Positions 1,578 through 43,858 of a stretch of 64,000 bases of DNA are shown here, piece after piece. Positions within the stretch are counted from its first letter, which is position 1; each line of letters starts with the position of its first letter. Under the pieces are notes generated by a model. It searched no databases and was not told the DNA's origin. It was given only the letters and a program-made list of their open reading frames with translations. Source of the stretch: Trichosphaerium sp. ATCC 40318 (Eukaryota; Protista; Tubulinea). The stretch spans positions 186,001 through 250,000 of the forward strand of contig JALMLS010000538.1 of assembly GCA_038496445.1 (NCBI GenBank), read 5' to 3'. The translations under genes and the position numbers were made by a program.

Positions 1578-3398
1578 TTGTTGCGTTGTGTTGAGAGTTT
1601 GAAAAAAATGCTGCATGAATTGCTGCCAACTTTTCAGAAAAATTCGGAGTGTAATAGCCGAATACGCTTCAATTCTCTTCGTTGAAAAAGTAACTAATTA
1701 TTGGCTCGTTGTGTAAGAGTCTTCTAGATCTAGACTAGCATCTAAGTATGTCAATACGATGTTTTTACCTCACAAAACAGGTTGAAACATTGCTGCATCC
1801 AATCTTTTCCGGCACGTAATATAAACGACACAATTAGGCTTTTCTGTCTGCAGTTTGCTCAGTGAGTTATGTATGCTTCCACGAATTTGTTCAGTTCTTA
1901 GAGAAACAAAAGAGTTGAATGATGTTGGCATTGAACATTGTATTTTATTGGTACCAATACCATCTGTGATCTGTTGGCTTACATCCAAAGTTAGAAACCG
2001 TCACAAAGTGTGTAGAGCCAGATTATGTAAGCACTCCACTATTAAAACAAAATTATTTTGATGTTGAAAATAGTTTTTTATGATTGACGCTTGAGTAAAT
2101 AGTAGCCATACATACTGTAAATAATATATAGAGAGTATGAAACATTCACCAACAGTGATGTAGCCTACAATGACTCTAAAAAATAGTTTAATTTAGGGAC
2201 TTTTTAAGCATTGTTTAGCTAAGTTATACTTATTGCACACATTATCAATTATGTTTTCATCACTTTGAGTAGGTGTCAATGGTCGCATTTAATAGCCTCA
2301 AAGCATGTTATTGAAAAGTAAACGCACAATAAAGTGCGTCAAATGTGGGAGTTTGTTGAATGATATTTGATGAAACAAAAGGTTTACTATTCTACACTGA
2401 TGTTATATGTTATGTTCTACACTTTTCTTCATTAGAAAATGAGTATATGGCATAGTGGTGCCACTATGATCAATTGTAAAAATACACATGCCAATAGCGT
2501 TTGCACCAAAAGTACTCACTTACATTTTTTTTTTCCCAAAGTTATCAAACAATCAATTTTACATCTCAGTTATTGCCACCGATATACTCACATGTGTTGC
2601 AAGTGATGTATTTTAGCTGGCACGTTTATGTGTTTTTAAAAATGGCCCAGTTTTCTACAGCTGGAATTTTTCATAAAACCAATATTAAAGGCTAGGGCCA
2701 AAACGGTCCAAACCGTGACTATGTAGAAACAGAAGTATATGATCTGTTTATATAGTTTAGAGAATATCGATGGCATTGCCTGGCATTATACCTTTTTCTT
2801 GCCTTTTTGTTTTAAACAGAGTTTTATGCTTGGAAACGCATATTCTACGCACGAATAACGCTTGTATAGTATTGTTCTTTGATTTTAAAGAGCAATTAAC
2901 TTTTTTAGCCACTAAACGCTGTAAAACACTTATAACTTCAGTTCCTACATATTTGGAACAATTAAAAGGCTGTGTAATGTGCAGGCATCATGAAACCGTG
3001 TTCAAGGAGTTTATGTTGCTGCTTTCCTTTTAAGGCAAACAGTTTTTGCTTTTAAGTAAGTACTTTTTTCCGTGCTTACAACGTAATCTTATGCTCTCAC
3101 ACTCCACTGCCTTGTTTAACAGCATCTTTTAAAGCCGATAAGCATGTGTGGAATGCTTACGTAATCTGGCTCTAGTTAATTAGCTATAGGTTCTAACCTG
3201 TATTGTCTGATCCTTTTTCATTCTTGTTACAATGGCGGAGCACCAACAACATAGCACGCTCGATCCGAACAGCGGTGAAATCTTAGGCAGCGTTTTTCTA
3301 CCTGACTATTCTGAACGTACTCGGTCTTGACTGTTCTTGACAATCAACACTTCAGAGAATTCTCAGGAAGTTGTGTTAACTATTTGTTACAAATAACG

Positions 3399-5217
3399 AT
3401 GGCTGAGAAGAAGAGAAAGAGTACTACGCCTGTGAAGGGAGAAAAGGCAGCAAAGAAGGCCAAGACAGCCTCTACTAGCAAAGGCAAAGGATTTGCAATT
3501 GCTGGCCTCGAAAACCAAAATGCATCGTTTGAAAACTTCAATAAGGAGCTTTGTGGCATGCTTGTGGGTATGCATCGATTTTCATGTCGGTTAAGCTTAC
3601 AGTTTGAAGAATTGGGTGAAATAGAGAAGAGTAAAGGTGACGTAGTGCGTTGGAAGTCATACACGACAGCAGCTGCCCAATTAAGAGGGTAATTATTGGA
3701 ATTTTTGGATTTTTTCCGTTAAACGCACTGCTGAATAACCGCAGGTATCCAAAGAAGATCGAGTCAGGAAAAGAAGCTAAAAGTACATCGTTACGATCAA
3801 AAAGCGTAAACTTACCTCTGTTGTAGAGTTAAAGGGTATAGGTGTAAAAATAGCAGCTAAAATACAACAATACGTTGATACAGGCACAATCCCAAAGTAT
3901 TAACTCTAAAACGCCACAAAACCTCATTTCCCTGCGTAGGCTTGTAAAAGAACTCGCCAGACCAGAAATCCAAGCTCTAAAAAAATTAACGAGCATACCA
4001 GGAGTTGGGTACGCTTTTTTTTATCGTCAACAGTCCTTTTGCACTTACTACTGATTTAAAAAATCCTGTCAACCTTTATTTTTGGTTTTTGATCAAAAAC
4101 CTCTGAAAAACTAATGTCATTTTCAACAGTCCTGTTGCTGCCGCAAAATGGTTTACAGATCTCGCTGTCTGTGATATCGAAACACTTCGTGTAGCTGTCA
4201 GTAAGGGCGATATTGTATTGACTTCACACCAAAATGTTGGTACGTCACGTGTTAATCACGTGAAGAAAAATTATAAAAATCGATCAAACTTGTTGACATT
4301 TGGTTGATTTATTGTTATTCAAGGTGTAACGTACTATGAGGATTTGATGGAGCGTATTCCAAGAAAGGAAGTTACAAAGCTTGCAAAATATGTGTTTGAT
4401 GTTTGTAAAGAAATTGATCCAAAAATAACAGCACAAGTGTGTGGTAGTTAGTACGTGATATCTTGTTTGCAGTTTATGTTATTTTGGATTACTGGGTCAT
4501 TATTGTTTACAACTTAAAAATAGTCGAAGAGGAAATGATACATCCGGTGATTTAGGTAAGAAATCAAGCCAAAAACAATTCTTTCCAAAAAAAAATCCGA
4601 AATGTTAACCTTTGTCTAGATGTCTTGCTAATGCACCCTGATTTCAATAACGCTGCAAAAAAGAAAAAGAACTTTCTAAATATATTACCACGTATAATCA
4701 AAAAGCTTAAGGAACAAGGTATGTATCCGAGCAATGTCTCCAGAAATCTTGTAAAGAGAAAATATTTTTGATATCTGTTTGAAAAAACCAACTCACAAAA
4801 AATCTCTTCGTAGAATTCCTTGTTGCTGATATGTCCAATGGTAATGTTAAATACATGGGCGTGTGTCGCTTGCCTGATAAGAATGCTAAAGCGAGACATA
4901 TTGATCTTAAACTGTTTCCTACAGAGGCTTTTGTTCCTGCTCTTCTTCATTTCACTGGATCTGCAGAACATAACAGACAGATGAGTTGTATTGCTATTCT
5001 CAATGGATTTATGTTGAACGAGTATGAACTACGTCCAGTCGGAGAGAATGGTACAAAGGGTGATTCTATACCAGTCACTTGTGAAGAGGTACGGCTAGAC
5101 AACATTTTGTGAAACCAAAAAATTTAAACAACATTTCTAACTTGGTGTTTGTACAAATAGGACATCTTTGAGATGTTGGGAGTACCTTATCGTGAACCAA
5201 GCCAAAGAAACTTGTAA
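3399..5217 (+). CDS. POLB: DNA polymerase beta (family X), multi-exon
   Basis: Spliced exons give the HhH motifs KGIGVKIAAKI and IPGVGP, catalytic VCGSYRRG..SGDLDVLL, RHIDLKL, LLHFTGS, LNEYEL and C-terminal EEDIFEMLGVPYREPSQRNL*. No BRCT domain. Confidence 0.92.
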
Positions 5218-5619
5218 AAACAAACCAACGCTGCAGACAAAATAAAATAGTTTGTTACATTGCACACTAAGATTATTCGGTACTCTCACTATGTTCAAAT
5301 ACGCCAAGTGCTTTTTGAAAGCTTTTTGCTTTTACTGCATTCTTCTGTTACAGCCATGTGCGTCAAAGTTGGCGACCAAAAAGTTTAATAAGTATGAACA
5401 TAAACACGCAACGCGAACACCTGAAATAAGTGACACACGTCAGAATGTGCACTCTCATAGAATTATGACAACGTAAAGTGCGCTTATGTAACGAGTAAGA
5501 AAATTAACACGTGCCGAACGATCTCTTTTTACACAAATTTTATTTTTATTTTTTTTGAATCTTTTCTGTTTTGTCAATTGTTTGCAAGTTTAACACCTTC
5601 TGTTTTCTTGAAGATGAAT

Positions 5620-6890
5620 CTATTTACGTCTTCTCTTCTTTGCCAGTAGATTCTTTGGTATCTCATCTAACCCTTTAATCGAAAATAGCCTGTTTGCGCG
5701 CTGCTCTAAAGTTCCACCACATTTCATCCCTCTTAGTGTAAGTTGAGTCTTTAAATCATCCAAACCAAGTTTCTCAAGTGATTTACTTGATGAGAAGTCA
5801 TCCAAATCTACTTTTTCGACCTAAACAAAATAACTTTCAGCAAAAACCAAAAAAAAAAAGTTACCGTTTTTTACCTTTTTTTTTGGTTCTTCTTTAACTT
5901 CCTCAGCCGGTTTCTTAGATTTACTAGCTTCTTTCTTAGCTTTACTTTTTCCATCACCATTCAAACGTTGCTTTTTACGTGGTGGTGGGGATACATCCTC
6001 TTCTTCTTTTTCCTCCACACTTTTATCCTCTCCAGACTCACTATCATGGGATGGAGCGTCTTCTGAGTCAGCATCAGATTCAGAATCAGATAAATCATCA
6101 TAAGGTGTCCTAGAATCAAAAATCAACAAAGATTCATATCACCAAGGACCTCTAAAAACGAGGCAACAAATGCGCTGAAATGACGATTTCAAAAAAAAAT
6201 ACAAAAAAGGAGATTTTGTGGTTCTAGACGTACCAGAACTTTGGTTTTTTCTTTGGTTTCGGTTTTTGTGCTTTTTTCTTTGCTTCTAAAGCCTTTAAAC
6301 CTAAAAGAGTTACAAAACGGCCGTACGTTATCATAACAATCATACCTTTTTCCAGTGATACCTGTGAGTGCTTACTAACTTGCTCACGTTGCTCATGGAA
6401 CTCGTTTTGGTCAAACTGAAATTTTGGAACCTTAGGGCGTAGTGCTCTTTGTCTTGCTTTGTGTCTGGCAATATACTTGTCTTTGTTTAAGTCCCTGGTA
6501 GCGGTTAAATTAGTTTTATGTAAATGTAAGTGTAATTACGCACCAGTCTCTTTGTCGTTTCTCTCGTTTAACGTCGCGCAAGCGTCGCCCATTTAAATCT
6601 CTACAAGCACCGAAATTCGTTGTTTTTTTGACGAAACCGCGTGGACCGCCTCTTAAATTAGCACCAAAACCTCCCTTACCTCCTAAGAGGGAGAAATTTA
6701 ACGATAGGACATTAATTAAGCCTGTAAGCGTTTCTGAATCCCCAGGATATACGGTGCCATGTTTTAACGCCTGATACCGAGGTGGAATACCCGTTCGTTT
6801 ATGTATTGCTTCTTTTAACGCCCCAATAGATATGGAATCATTGATATTGAAATTTAGAGTATCTGAGCCAGTCTGTAAAAGAACTTGCAT
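5620..6890 (-). CDS. SDE2: Splicing regulator Sde2 (ubiquitin-like N-terminus, LGG|KGG cleavage site, C-terminal SAP domain)
   Basis: A ubiquitin fold is followed by [14 protein letters not shown]...[16 protein letters not shown], an acidic linker, and the SAP-like [32 protein letters not shown]. Confidence 0.93.
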
Positions 6891-37050: not shown

Positions 37051-38195
37051 GTACATAAACAAATTTTCAATTGAAAATCGTGTCTTTTAGCAATCTGTCA
37101 ATAGCCGCAAATTGATTTGCAGAGGAATCCCCGGTAAGAGGGCATACCAGCATTGGTCGTGAGAAGCTGACATTTGGTGACTGAGGTATCAATTATTAGC
37201 GAGATTGAATTGATGGTAGATAGAAACGTGACCCATTGAGTAGGTACAACTGCTGAGGAGTGGGATACGAAAAGATTCATTTTCTCGTCCTCGTTGTGGC
37301 CTTTAATAGCTTCAGTCTTCAAGAAAATAAACACCGTGGAGCTCGTTAACAACGTGTTATAACAACTTTACTATTGGTAAACTAAACTTATGGGTGAATT
37401 GGGTTTGAGAAACAATCACAAAACACGTTTGTTTAGAAAATATGACTTTCTATCCTAAGTTAGCAATTTAAACGTGGTGTCAAGCGTTTGGAAAAGTATG
37501 AATTATGTAGCAATAGGGACACCGTAGTAAATAAGTTTTCTTGCTTATACAGTTAGTGGTAATAGCCAACCAACAGATACCTACATACTTTTTTGTCAAC
37601 TAAAATAATTTTGGATTCACATTAGCGCGCTCCCTAGTAACGCGTTAAAAATGATGCTTTATGCTCACTACAAAAAAATACTACACTACTATCGTAAGGA
37701 CAAGCGTGGTTCTTATATGTCCACACAGTATTGTAACGCGCAGTTACAGCGTAAACTTGCTGTAATATTACTACTGCAGGAAGAAATGTCCGAGGGTTGC
37801 GTCATGTGTAAACCCAAATCATGCGTTGTCCCTTTTTCTACAATAAAGTGACTTTGTGAAGCTCCAAATCGATAAACTAGTCGAATTCTCTGTACTAGCG
37901 CAAAAATTCTCTACAAATGAAAAAAATGTGCTTCATTTTTAGTTCTTTTTTTTCATACATACCACGCCAATAACAACACTTGTATCGCTTTAGTTTCAAA
38001 CAAGAGGTAACTTAGCTATAATTTAACCTTAAATTACCTTTTAAAGTACTTTTTGTAACCACGTGAATTCGTGACAAACCAGAGCGTTTTTTTTCTTCAA
38101 AACCGCGCAAATGTCTAAATTAGTTCCGTAAAGAATTCTGTCCTATTTTTTTTTCGATCACGTGACTAATTTCTAAATTTCTGCCCTAGTGAACA

Positions 38196-41100
38196 ATGTC
38201 AGCAGCACTATACTGCGGTGTTATGGTTGCTTTAGTCTTCTTTGTTTCGAGTTCGCTTTCCGCTTCAAGCGCTAGTCCTGATACTATCTTCAATTGTAAC
38301 GTAACTGCTACTAACTGGGGCTGCCCTCCTACTGATTGGAGGAACAAAACAATAACGCGAAACGGCGAAAGGGTGCAAGTACCAAACCGCTTAAGATGTG
38401 ACACGAAACCCGAACCACTCATGAGTTGGGCGACAAAGACAGTCCGAACTGATGACTATATGGTCTTCGTTGGCGCAGAGGATAACCCACAGACCGAATA
38501 TGTACCTGGGAGTATCATTGAAGTTACTGTACTTACCCTCAAGTACTGGTCAAAGTACAGAGGGTTGATGATGTGCGCTTTTCTATCTTTTTTAGACTTT
38601 TTTTCATTTTGCCCTTTTGGTTCCCTCTCCATACGTAACATTACTAATATTGTCTTTAAGGTACGCCGAAGATTCGGACAATAATCACGTGGGTGAATGG
38701 AAGTTACCAGATGATTTCCCACGTGCGTGTGAACTTTGCGAGATTTTCTTTTTTGAATCAGTTTCTGTGTTGCTACTTTTTTTTCATCTTTTTATGATCA
38801 CGTGACGTTGTATATGAACTTACGCGTGTATTTAGCCGTATTCCAGTTGCCTTGGGCTTCTGATCATCAAACTTGCGCTCAGACATTGATGCACGCAAGT
38901 GCTCAATTGAAGCCTTTGAGATCTACCATTTCGTTTGTTGCTCCGCCAAAGGGTACCGGAAAAATCACTTTCCGAGCACTCATAAAGAGCGGCGATGCCA
39001 ACACTGGTGACTTCTGGTGGCCAAATATGGATGGCGACTTTACAATGACAGAATCAAGCGAATCTCTTCCAACAAACACTGGATGGTTCCAAACAGAGGT
39101 ACTGTCCAGCAACCAAATATTATTGTCTTATTCTTTCAAAGGTTGGACAATCTTGTACTGAGCGATGTGAGATGGAAAGTCTTCAATGTGACTTGGTTTC
39201 TTTGGAGAGTATAAACGGCATTGACGAGATTAACTCAGAATTGAAAGTATCTGGATTTTTATGCAAGAAACCCTTCCTCAGTGGTTGCAGCGCTCTTGGT
39301 ACAACACAAAGTACAGCAGGATTTTGTTACTACGATGATACAAGATGCGGAATGCAAGGTCGTTCTAATGATAGAGTAAGCTGTGACGCAAAGAGTACAA
39401 GTGATGAAGACGGGTATGTTTACTTTACGCTGCTTCTTTATTTTTCTAACTTCTTCTCTAAGAATGCGATTCTGTCGATGCTTGGAAGCTACCTTAGCGC
39501 CAGTCACACAGGATAACACCACTGCACCATCTGATAGCGGTACTGGATCACCAATCGACGATCCAAATGGCTCATCTTCATCCTCCCGACCAATCATCTC
39601 CGTTTTGTTGCTTTGCCTATGCACATTCGGTATTGCCTTCTTCACATCACAAAACGGTCGCACTTCAACGCCATTTATCCTTGGACTATTACTTATTGCT
39701 CTCATCGCATTGCCTTCGGCTCACGGACACAACTGGGTCACAAGCATTAGTCGAACACCTCGTGCTAGTACAGAAACACCTTGTCCACCTAAAATTCAAG
39801 AGGGACCTCATGTTCAAGTTGGTCCTGGTCAGGAATTTGAACTAGAAAATGTTCAAGGTCACGGAGGTGTATCTTACTTTGCTATTGTTCACAAGAAGAA
39901 TGAGGATAAATTAAAACTCCACACAAAGAAGATGTTTGAAAAATACTTTGACGAAGCGCCTGCATCAGCACTCTCAACACTTCGTGTTGTACACAGACGT
40001 TTTAGAAACCGCGATCCAGAAGATGGAGACTCCTTCCTGGGACCTGAGATTGCCATAACGGATCCTGACTTTGTTCCTCGACCAGAAGCTTTTGGAGGAT
40101 GGGGAGCTGAAGCAAAGTTGTTTCCATACAAACCAGAGTATCATCAAGACAACTACGCTGAATACGAACATCCAGATATGCCTTGGATTGAAGGTGTTTT
40201 CAGAGGAAGACATTACACCAAGAGACCTGGAGATTCTGATGCTGTTAAGATTAAGATACCTGATAGCTCTGAAAAGGGAAGGTACATCGTTCATTGGTAC
40301 TGGAATGGATATCGTGACTGTACAGATGTTGACTACGTTGATCATCAAGTTGAGAATATTTACGGAATTAAAGAAAACGTGACATCATACACGTACGTTC
40401 TTCAACATATATAAATCAATCGTACTTATAAATGTGCTTAGGCGTGTAGATCACTGCTTCTTCCCAAAGTACAGAAGTGCAGGAAGTACGAACTAAACTT
40501 TTAAATATCAATTGCTAATGCTGTTTTCTTTAGGATGTACAAAAATCTACACTGACTTGTCTTACTGCGCTCGAACATGTGGTCTAACGTGTTCTGGTAT
40601 CGCGGTTATGCCTCTATCAGTTGCATCAAGATACGCAGAAGAAGCATCACTGGTTCCTGATGGTTGCTTTGAAAACTTCGATAACTTCACGGCAATAGAA
40701 AACCCTGAAGATATAAACGTTTGTTTCTCTGTGCGAGGAAGAATACCTTCTGATACCTTTGGAGAAACAGAGATAGTCTTTGAGGATGACCCCGCCTATA
40801 GAGCCACATGTTATGTGAGAGGAACTGGCCGCGTATTTCCGGGATATGTAGCAGATACAGAAAAGGAGATACCATGGAGACATGGAGATAAATGTATCGA
40901 CTGCAACACAAGAGAACTCAACAAAGACTTATCGTTGACGAATATACCAGCCTGGCCGCTCTCTGAAGATTGTATAAACTGCGACCTTGAACCTGTAGTA
41001 GTTAACAAGCCAAAGGTACCTGCGTTAATCAACAAACAGTCAAGTATGGCTTGTAACGGAGCAAGAAACGTTTGGACTCAAGTGAACGGAGAGAACCACT

Positions 41101-41387
41101 ACAGTTGTAACGGAACAAGAGCTGAAGTTTCTAAGCTTTGTCATAAACAGCTTAGGTTCGACGGTAGAAGAGAAAAAACTGATGGTTTCTTCCCTTCAGA
41201 GTGTGCTATGGCTGCTAGCTTGGATCCCGAATGTACTGACAAGATTACAATGTTCGATCGCAGCTTGACTTATGGTGGTGTACGTGCTGGCCAGTGCTAT
41301 TGTCAGACAAAGGTTGAGTGTTGTAACGGGTGCTCATTGGTCGATAGAGGTACTGCCTATCACTATTATGATCTTGCGATGGTTTGA
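38196..41387 (+). CDS. Secreted multidomain putative polyprotein: Reeler-like + Cys-rich domain + membrane/GPI-like anchor + internal signal peptide + His-brace LPMO-like domain + Cys-rich tail
   Basis: Exons join in frame across GT-AG introns: YVPGSIIEVTV...YRGLMM|YAED...VGEW...FVAPPKGTGKITFRALI (Reeler-like); GQSCTERC...SCDA...DG|MRFCRC; two hydrophobic segments; AHG-HNW...GHGG...GRYIVHWYWNGYRDCTDV. Confidence 0.8.
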
Positions 41388-42135: not shown

Positions 42136-43858
42136 ATGAAGTTCCTCTTTATCATATTGGCGCTAGTGACCCTTAAAAACTATGTATATAGTCAAGAGAT
42201 AGATTTGTTTACTGCCATCAGTACCGTTTCAGCAGGAGGCCCAGGTGCTATTGAAATCGCAGAGGAGAGCGTAACAGACCCTGTATCAATAATAGGCGGT
42301 ACTAGAATCCTAAGAGCTACACGTACTGCGTCTTCAGCGCCGTCTCTGACCTTGCGTTGTGCTGCTATTGCAGGTTTTCTAGCCTACAGCGCAGATGTGA
42401 CTGTTTCAGGTGAGTGTAGAGCTATATACGCTGGGGATGATGGTAACGGTTTAACTCCTACGAATTTCATACAGAGCGGATGTGGTAAGTGAATTCTTTT
42501 TTGTAAAGAACACTTTACTTCTTTTGCTAAACGGTTTTTTCTTTTTTATTAAGATTGTTGGAATCTGCACATGGTTGACACTGATAACGATGTTGTTCTT
42601 GAGTTTATTGCACGTAGTACACTTCAATCTGATCTTTTGGTATCCACCCTCCCAATACAGACGGCGGTTGTAGATCAAGATATTTGCTTCCCTTTTTCCG
42701 GGAACCGTACTGTTTATTCTTCTATTGACCATATTGAGATTGGCATTATTGGTAATAGGATTAATATTGATGCGAATATAGGATATTCGTGTTGTCAACC
42801 AAGACTATCCTGCTGGTAAGTGTTTTTTCCAACTTGTGTTTTTTCGTGATAGTTTTTTTTTCTTTCTTGTTTTTTTCCAAAGCGTGTCTTGACTCGTTCT
42901 ACCGCTAAAGTTTTGCTTCGTTAGGCATACTGTTACAGATTTGAACGACGTGATGGTTAGTGAAACAAATATTGGAGATACTATAAGATTAGGTATCATG
43001 TGCGAAAACTATGACTCGTTGCCAGAAAGCATAGAAGAATTTGAAATTTCTTTTGGTTTTCCGCAAACTATTGGTCGTATGGACGATACAACAATAACCT
43101 GTAATAGTGCGGTAAGTTCCCTCGAACAATCTCCAAATTCTCTAGGTCTCTAAGTTATCTTATACGTGTATCAGGCAATGAATCCAACAGTTACTGGGAA
43201 TGCACTTACATTGAGTGCTATCTTAAACGAGAACGAATTAGTTAGCTGTGTGGTTGAAGTTGATTTGTTTGCTAATGGTATAGCGAATGATATTGCAGCT
43301 GATATTACGTCATTACGCACACCTGATGTCACATTCAAATCTAACGCCAATATGAATACGTGAGTACCCAATATTTTTTTTTTTTAAGCTGACAGTTTTT
43401 GATAATATCTTGTTTAAGGCAAGGCACAGTTGATTTCTGCAAACCTCCAGAACCCTCAACTGTTGTGGTTGGAAATCCACCCACAGACGCACCTACTCTT
43501 CAACCTACACCTGAACCACCAACTGCAACTGCAGCACCTACAACTGAACCTCCAACAGGAACTCCAACAACTCTATCGCCAACTGAGCCAAGTCAACTAA
43601 TTTGTATTTCACCTCGTATTATTGATGGCATGTGCCAGTACGTATTTCAACAATGAAGACATTCCCATAGCTATATAGCCCTATACTCTATCTAATGACA
43701 TTTCTAGGTGTCAAACATTCCCTTGTCACAGACTACCTGATAGTGATGATATTCAATGTGAAACAGAAGATTGGTATTGCTATTTCATAACAATGGCTCC
43801 TTCTTCAGGTTCCTTTAGAGTATCTTACGGAGGATTTGAATGTTTTTGTTCAGTGTAA
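42136..43858 (+). CDS. Secreted multi-exon protein with beta-rich domains, Pro/Thr stalk and Cys-rich C-terminus; function unknown
   Basis: Signal peptide MKFLFIILALVTLKNYVYS; exons bounded by GTAAGT/GTGAGT/GTACGT donors; PPTDAPTLQPTPEPPT stalk. Confidence 0.7.

Follow-up and report, generated by a model that had tools for sequence, protein, structure and literature searches.

A Reeler-domain precursor in Trichosphaerium and related protists with a putative internal signal peptide before an LPMO-like His-brace domain

Positions 38196–41387 of the forward strand of a 64,000-nucleotide stretch of DNA (the window) from the tubulinean protist Trichosphaerium sp. ATCC 40318 (GenBank assembly GCA_038496445.1, contig JALMLS010000538.1, positions 186,001 to 250,000) hold a gene that probably encodes a two-chain secretory precursor processed by the signal peptidase of the endoplasmic reticulum (ER). 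The predicted first chain consists of a Reeler domain and a Cys-rich domain; the second begins with a His residue that directly follows a putative internal signal peptide and opens a domain resembling the lytic polysaccharide monooxygenases (LPMOs). With somewhat less assurance, we favour a wider reading, in which the gene belongs to a widespread family of protist LPMO-like proteins made as the second chain of a polyprotein: signal peptidase would create the catalytic His behind a former glycosylphosphatidylinositol (GPI) signal, and a Reeler partner, in some members with cupredoxin or DOMON domains, would be anchored and produced at a 1:1 ratio.

The earlier note on this DNA, made from the letters alone, had described one continuous spliced frame with these parts in this order, and joining seven exons reproduces it as a single frame of 2802 nt encoding 933 amino acids (Table 1). 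It had further described a second signal peptide with small residues at −3 and −1 and His as the next residue. Ala is indeed found at −3, Gly at −1 and His414 directly behind them, so that by sequence prediction the His is residue 1 after a signal-peptidase site A-H-G↓H. The surroundings have the layout of a signal-peptidase polyprotein, with a first hydrophobic segment of 17 amino acids, a loop of 10 amino acids containing one Arg, and a second segment with a hydrophobic core of 13 amino acids. As the earlier note had also stated, the stretch between the two hydrophobic segments contains no Met; going upstream in frame, the first Met is M326, within the motif MRFCRC.

An exhaustive HMMER search with the His domain against 1.84 billion cluster representatives (E ≤ 1e-3) returned 368 homologs, the best with 43% identity, whose alignments open at query residue 1, the His. 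Start positions were determined for the best 150 of the 368, and the architecture read from the window recurs among them: the start motif HNW is internal in 84 of these 150, at positions ~65 to ~920, and stands right after an ordinary N-terminal signal peptide in another 38. The other 28 have no HNW start and are fragment-like. Position −1 is Ala, Gly or Ser in all 84 internal forms (72, 7 and 5 cases; background 23%), position −3 is Ala, Val, Thr, Ser, Cys or Gly in all 84 (background 41%), and Pro is enriched at −5/−4. Signal-like segment and His are thus conserved together in every internal form (84/84), as the earlier note's proposal implied. The N-terminal-type homologs have Ala, Gly or Ser at −1 in 35 of 38 cases. 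On a tree of the domain the internal and N-terminal forms are interspersed, with 15 changes of which at least 7 are forced; because truncated gene calls may account for some of the N-terminal rows, no inference is made about how many fusions took place.

Of the 84 internal forms, 78 show a pair of hydrophobic segments ahead of the His, and segment 1 has a median length of 17. The loops between the two are short (median 5 amino acids) and basic (mean 1.6 Lys/Arg compared with 0.24 Asp/Glu). The hydrophobic core of the internal segment measures 12 amino acids, compared with 11 in the N-terminal signal peptides of the family, and the distance from the last charge to the cleavage site is 16 residues in both. 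By these predicted features, the internal segment is sized like a cleavable signal peptide, not like a membrane anchor. Both halves of the precursor are Cys-rich and carry N-glycosylation sequons; both must therefore be lumenal, and two membrane passes are consequently required between them.

The residues expected of a His-brace protein are among the best conserved. In 78 aligned His domains, H1, W3, H45 and Y73 are invariant, and N2, R9, P18, Q30, Q35, D141, Y146, P152, G184, W192, G194, Y195, D197 and D200 are conserved in at least 90%. The AlphaFold (AF2) model of the domain has a predicted local distance difference test score (pLDDT) of 91.2 and a predicted template modelling score (pTM) of 0.88. 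Compared with 48,161 chains using VIA-align, this model matches LaX325 best (Z 8.0), followed by the AA15 LPMO of Thermobia (Z 7.8); in both alignments residue 1 of the model lies on residue 1 of the chain, and the top 50 include about 15 LPMOs from AA9, 10, 11, 13, 15 and 16. Searched by shape, the ESM Atlas gives TM scores of 0.51–0.52 to eukaryotic clusters, one of them named chitin-binding type-4/LPMO_10. Searched by features, it gives 0.92–0.93 to LPMO_10-bearing clusters, a set to which 48 of 100 hits belong, with a BIM1-like cluster lower in the list. Predicted fold and language-model features thus bear out the LPMO/X325-like character that the earlier note had assigned to the domain. 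Each of these lines is moderate, and together they converge on an LPMO/X325-like domain of the His-brace type that lies outside the named sequence families.

We propose the following course of processing. Signal peptide 1 would direct the Reeler and Cys-rich modules to the ER lumen and then be cleaved. Segment 1 would stop translocation, and segment 2, after a very short basic loop, would restart it as an internal signal peptide. Cutting by ER signal peptidase after the A-x-G/A site would leave His414 as the free amino terminus of the second chain, which would comprise the LPMO-like copper domain, a Cys-rich region and a PAN/apple-like binding module, without an anchor. Its histidine-brace copper site would be formed by the free NH2 group, His1, His45 and Tyr195. 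This chain would be released, or would stay bound to the first chain, which may be kept at the cell surface by the leftover hydrophobic hairpin or, alternatively, by a GPI anchor, provided that the transamidase can use the extended signal and attach the anchor at the Ser-rich stretch. Cleavage, copper binding, the GPI step, 1:1 release, the substrate and the partner roles are elements of this scheme that we infer. As to function, we commit to a second chain that would be a redox-active copper protein of the LPMO type, with a glycan at the cell surface or inside the phagosome as its target, because its features are nearest to LPMO_10/AA15, because it carries a binding module and because some partners have electron-transfer domains. 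The Reeler chain would then be an anchored partner for docking or electron supply, and the substrate could be the wall of prey, material from the wall or cyst of the organism itself, or another substance.

The upstream chain has a recognizable family history. The N-terminal domain of the window protein matches the N-terminal parts of two homologs in phmmer (P0001, E 6e-49; P0161, E 1e-46), and three homologs pass the Pfam cutoff of 21 bits for Reeler, PF02014 (P0161, 22.8; P0066, 26.6; P0122, 40.2). The separate exon pieces of the window, used unspliced as queries, give no PF02014 hit. The domain that the earlier note had called Reeler-like is, to judge by its homologs' Pfam matches, probably a true Reeler domain and is better described as a divergent one. 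A Reeler-like module stands upstream in nearly all internal forms; eight have no match, several of these being fragments. The Cys-rich domain is matched by 49 fetched proteins in a local phmmer search. In five homologs (P0006, P0066, P0122, P0025 and P0004) it shows sub-threshold similarity (E 3e-5 to 0.04) to the Pfam family Glyco_transf_18 (GT18; GnT-V), confined to the last ~85 positions of the profile, which suggests that the Cys-rich domain and GT18 share a small C-terminal domain. Some homologs carry additional domains between Reeler and hairpin: a cupredoxin of the plastocyanin/azurin type (PF00127, above cutoff) in P0015 and P0043, TSP1 repeats in P0122 and a sub-threshold DOMON match in P0066. 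These additions to the partner chain are possibly modules for electron transfer or adhesion.

The search with the upstream modules also retrieved stand-alone proteins of 368–385 amino acids (P0182–P0184), composed of a signal peptide, a Reeler-like domain, a Cys-rich domain, a run of small residues and a terminal hydrophobic tail. Judged by its sequence, the layout of this C terminus is that of a GPI-attachment signal. The fused proteins retain a similar arrangement: by a crude heuristic, 69 of 75 homologs have a run of small residues 4–8 positions ahead of segment 1, and segment 1 often contains Pro or Gly. In the window the layout departs from the canonical one, in which the tail lies at the C-terminal end, as the precursor continues past the tail into the loop, the internal signal peptide and the second chain. 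The hydrophobic anchor of the earlier note is therefore present as a segment, and it resembles a former GPI-attachment signal more closely than it does a stable anchor. As the stand-alone upstream modules end in a GPI-type tail, an origin by fusion is probable; most likely, a gene for a GPI-anchored Reeler protein was joined in frame to a gene for a secreted His1 protein. The junction would then consist of a former GPI signal, 1–10 residues and a former signal peptide, back to back.

Behind the His domain, the second chain continues with a Cys-rich middle region that is conserved in fused and stand-alone homologs alike. No fold could be assigned to this region, where the model is poor. Residues C92, C120, C123, W140, C146 and C149 of the last exon are invariant in homologs. 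For the last ~125 residues, nearly all of the top 25 VIA-align matches are PAN, apple, MANEC or WSC chains (Z 7.2–3.5; 61 chains in all with Z ≥ 2), and Foldseek places MANEC and the HGF N domain first, weakly. The model reaches a pLDDT of ~80–90 in this part; the exon pieces of the window give no Pfam hit for it. The C-terminal module is thus PAN/apple-like by predicted fold.

That the two halves belong to one gene follows from the exon structure. Exon 39463–40392 by itself runs from MRFCRC through the linker and the two hydrophobic segments and takes in the entire His domain, and since it joins the end of the Cys-rich domain to the His domain, the halves cannot be separate genes. The earlier note's statement that the downstream half is not an ordinary separate gene stands on this shared exon and on the absence of any Met after M326. 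Complete fused open reading frames (ORFs) are present in Trinity or MMETSP transcriptomes (Flabellula baltica, Rhizamoeba saxonica, Cavostelium apophysatum and MMETSP0437), and the transcriptome contigs of relatives are ~3 kb long, matching the length of the ORF. A 23-kb metagenomic contig of another eukaryote (L001) contains an uninterrupted ORF of 540 amino acids that runs from Reeler through the hairpin to the first part of the His domain. On this contig, at 3001–5898, the fused homolog P0161 is followed after 48 nt by an ORF of 408 amino acids on the same strand, probably the rest of the P0161 gene after a short intron. The single transcript that the earlier note had assumed is supported by the fused ORFs in relatives and is left incomplete by contigs from the organism itself, which do not bridge 39210–39451. 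A chimera of transcript assembly was ruled out, as such joins could not keep an open frame across more than 80 diverged clusters; initiation through a spliced leader or an internal ATG was likewise ruled out, as no Met follows M326.

Several results weigh against a processed LPMO-like polyprotein. A VIA-align Z of ~8 is middling by the tool's own scale, and the Foldseek matches (PDB and AFDB clusters) are weak (TM ~0.3) and mix LPMOs with GH123 N-domains and cohesins, so that the fold assignment rests on VIA-align and the ESM Atlas. Pfam finds no family for the His domain with the six exon-level pieces of the window and, over the 78 members, a single AA9 match (E 0.005) with no other match to LPMO, BIM1-like, DUF6595 or X325, and full-length homologs scanned against Pfam likewise yield no LPMO family; searches of the PDB by sequence, with the domain, its profile and its C-terminal third, gave chance hits only and no solved LPMO. 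A GPI signal with ~30 further residues behind it is a non-canonical substrate for the transamidase. In RNA of the organism itself, no contig at ≥99% identity bridges 39210–39451, and in three small runs contigs cover 39765–41387 only, that is, the downstream half. These RNA gaps leave room for an internal transcription start and would fit two genes, or an internal promoter, mis-joined by read-through, with the downstream half made from its own mRNA. However, coverage in the small runs fades gradually toward the 5′ end, as in 3′-biased libraries, there is neither a stop nor a Met from M326 to His414, and the last conserved upstream motif shares an exon with the His domain. The in-frame fusion also recurs in more than 80 clusters below 50% identity, among them transcriptome ORFs and a genomic ORF, and no copy of the palindrome TCACGTGA lies within 39100–39728, that is, before the His half. 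We therefore regard two mis-joined genes as highly improbable. Run X1 contains pieces of both halves at similar low depth.

The internal site might also stay uncleaved, giving a two-pass membrane protein with both ectodomains outside, in which His414 would not be N-terminal and there would be no His-brace chemistry. The topology needs two hydrophobic segments with or without cleavage, and the structural match to LPMOs is moderate, both of which would fit. However, an uncleaved helix leaves unexplained the small −3/−1 residues in 84 of 84 internal forms, the Pro at −5/−4, the 12-residue core and the invariant His at +1, which is the same as that behind true N-terminal signal peptides in relatives, and we find such a protein unlikely. 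The main functional rival, doubtful but to be taken more seriously, is that the precursor is processed as proposed and that the His1 domain serves copper binding or uptake in the manner of X325/Bim1, rather than being an oxidative enzyme. In favour of this role, LaX325 leads the structural matches, the feature search of the Atlas includes a BIM1-like cluster, the system is tied to the cell surface, and the nearly invariant D141, D197 and D200 could close the copper site like the Asp of X325 (PMC10952591). Against this, the feature and structure matches are mostly of the LPMO_10/AA15 type, the second chain itself is without a GPI tail, and the PAN/apple-like module, together with the cupredoxin and DOMON domains of partners, suits an enzyme that needs a substrate and electrons.

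Among characterized proteins, the LPMOs of AA15 and AA10 (LPMO_10) share with the family described here an Ig-like β-sandwich (TdAA15, 5msz: Z 7.8, root mean square deviation 2.6 over 118 residues; several AA10 chains), the predicted His1 start, a further conserved His and, in the last strands, a conserved Tyr, and the nearest Atlas clusters carry PF03067. The H-x-aromatic-x-x-x-P-S-R start and the Y-x-D-C-x-D-V end appear to resemble AA10/AA15 motifs. The present family differs from AA15/AA10 in giving no Pfam or PDB match by sequence, in having its second His only 44 residues past His1, in starting with HNW rather than HG and in placing the His, in most members, behind an internal rather than an N-terminal signal peptide. 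The fungal X325/Bim1 proteins are similar in structure (6ibh, Z 8.0, 126 of 150 residues, residue 1 to residue 1) and in their conserved Asp residues, which may provide an extra ligand. X325/Bim1 is a His-brace protein held at the cell surface via GPI (PMC10952591). Here, by contrast, the GPI-like signal is on the partner chain and not on the His1 chain, and the domain, which has no BIM1-like or DUF6595 match in Pfam, is 70 residues longer and has a helical insert.

The junction itself finds its closest likeness in viral glycoprotein polyproteins (flavivirus, pestivirus and bunyavirus Gn/Gc), in which a transmembrane segment is likewise followed by a short loop on the cytosolic side and by an internal signal peptide bearing a −3/−1 site, and two lumenal domains of one translation product become two chains. 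Unlike these, the present gene family is cellular and intron-containing and occurs in free-living protists, and the proposed cut would in addition create a catalytic N-terminal residue. The upstream chain resembles Reeler surface and redox proteins (FRRS1/SDR2 and the Reeler immune proteins of insects) in its N-terminal Reeler domain after a signal peptide and, in some members, in its redox modules (cupredoxin, weak DOMON). FRRS1/SDR2 has the arrangement Reeler–DOMON–cytochrome b561, whereas the family here lacks cytochrome b561, and its Reeler domain is followed by the GT18-C-like Cys-rich domain and the GPI-like signal.

The earlier note knew of no description of this architecture, and a search of full-text literature agrees: it found nothing that links LPMOs or the histidine brace with an internal signal peptide, Reeler, Amoebozoa or a new LPMO family of protists. 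The literature that it returned on internal signal peptides concerns viral polyproteins. The parts are of known kinds; their combination and the sequence family appear undescribed. A review from 2023 states that every known LPMO, like the related proteins with a histidine brace, carries an N-terminal signal peptide, and that the brace requires a free N-terminal His, the removal of the signal peptide unmasking the copper-binding amine (PMC10952591). In the present family, by contrast, the unmasking signal is usually internal. If cleavage takes place as predicted, the family would be a conserved cellular case of a polyprotein processed by signal peptidase, a strategy that is otherwise tied to viruses, and a new LPMO-like sequence family overlooked by Pfam-based annotation. 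It would also make the Reeler domain, the function of which is poorly understood, a dedicated partner of a copper enzyme, and screens for LPMOs that look for a signal peptide followed by His1 at the start of a protein would miss such genes.

Table 1. Features of the gene at 38196–41387 and related elements of the window
Feature	Position in window	Strand	Basis or remark
Seven exons	38196–38572, 38661–38722, 38836–39098, 39142–39413, 39463–40392, 40442–40485, 40534–41387	+	Spliced frame
N-terminal signal peptide, residues 1–23	38196–38264	+	Core GVMVALVFF, then SLSA; homologs begin with comparable signal peptides
Divergent Reeler domain (predicted), residues ~24–232	38265–39098	+	Exons 1–3; introns 38573–38660 and 38723–38835 inside
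Cys-rich domain GQSC...RFCRC, residues 233–331	39142–39481	+	Intron 39414–39462 within; phmmer matches
Ser/Thr/Pro/Gly-rich linker, residues 332–368, ending NGSSSSSRP; possible GPI omega region	39482–39592	+	Runs of small residues in homologs
Hydrophobic segment 1, IISVLLLCLCTFGIAFF, 17 amino acids, residues 369–385	39593–39643	+	Stop-transfer segment or former GPI-signal tail (predicted)
Polar loop TSQNGRTSTP, 10 amino acids, one Arg, residues 386–395; predicted cytosolic side	39644–39673	+	Charge bias of homolog loops
Segment 2, FILGLLLIALIALPSAHG, 18 amino acids, residues 396–413; putative internal signal peptide	39674–39727	+	13-residue hydrophobic core, then P-S-A-H-G; Ala at −3, Gly at −1
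His414, predicted residue 1 of mature second chain	39728–39730	+	His in 78/78 aligned domains; HMMER alignments begin here
LPMO-like (His-brace type) domain, 222 amino acids, residues 414–635, one exon	39728–40392	+	Homologs, model and structure matches
Candidate ligands H1, H45 and Y195 of the LPMO-like domain	39860–39862 (H45), 40310–40312 (Y195)	+	Conservation
Cys-rich middle region of second chain	40442–41009	+	Exon 6 and start of exon 7; contig-confirmed intron 40486–40533 inside
PAN/apple-like C-terminal module (predicted) and stop codon; no C-terminal hydrophobic tail	41010–41387	+	Structural matches
Palindrome TCACGTGA, candidate promoter element	38158–38165	.	31 nt 5′ of start codon
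Palindrome TCACGTGA, all copies	390, 4256, 38158, 38798, 41752, 44596, 52761, 56953, 62041		9 sites in window

All six introns of the gene model are of the GT..AG type and 43–113 nt long. Introns 38573–38660 and 40486–40533 appear as joints in public RNA contigs, and intron 40393–40441 has loose ends of public contigs as support. The intron that the earlier note had placed at 39414–39462 has zero contig coverage and is supported by homology: splicing recovers the conserved RFCxC end of the Cys-rich domain, whereas the unspliced frame meets a stop.

A 689-nt contig of run X1 spans 39500–40170 without a gap, across the junction, at 94% identity, which marks it as coming from a paralog or a relative. 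It is the sole bridging contig and, as it begins at 39500, is uninformative about the start of transcription. All five differences listed for 39500–39727 are synonymous third-position changes (19 differences of the whole table are unlisted), and replacements are numerous in the variable part of the His domain. A loose end at 38230 in run X1 comes from a copy whose 5′ coding end has diverged. At least one near paralog of the gene is therefore expressed, by the organism or by a close relative present in run X1.

The palindrome TCACGTGA occurs in 9 copies in the window against 0.73 expected (12-fold) and has the appearance of a promoter or regulatory element that is common in the genome. Its copies near the gene lie before the start codon, inside intron 2 and ~370 nt past the stop. 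The next ORF downstream, at 42136–42492, opens with a clear signal peptide (MKFLFIILALVTL...) and may encode another secreted protein.

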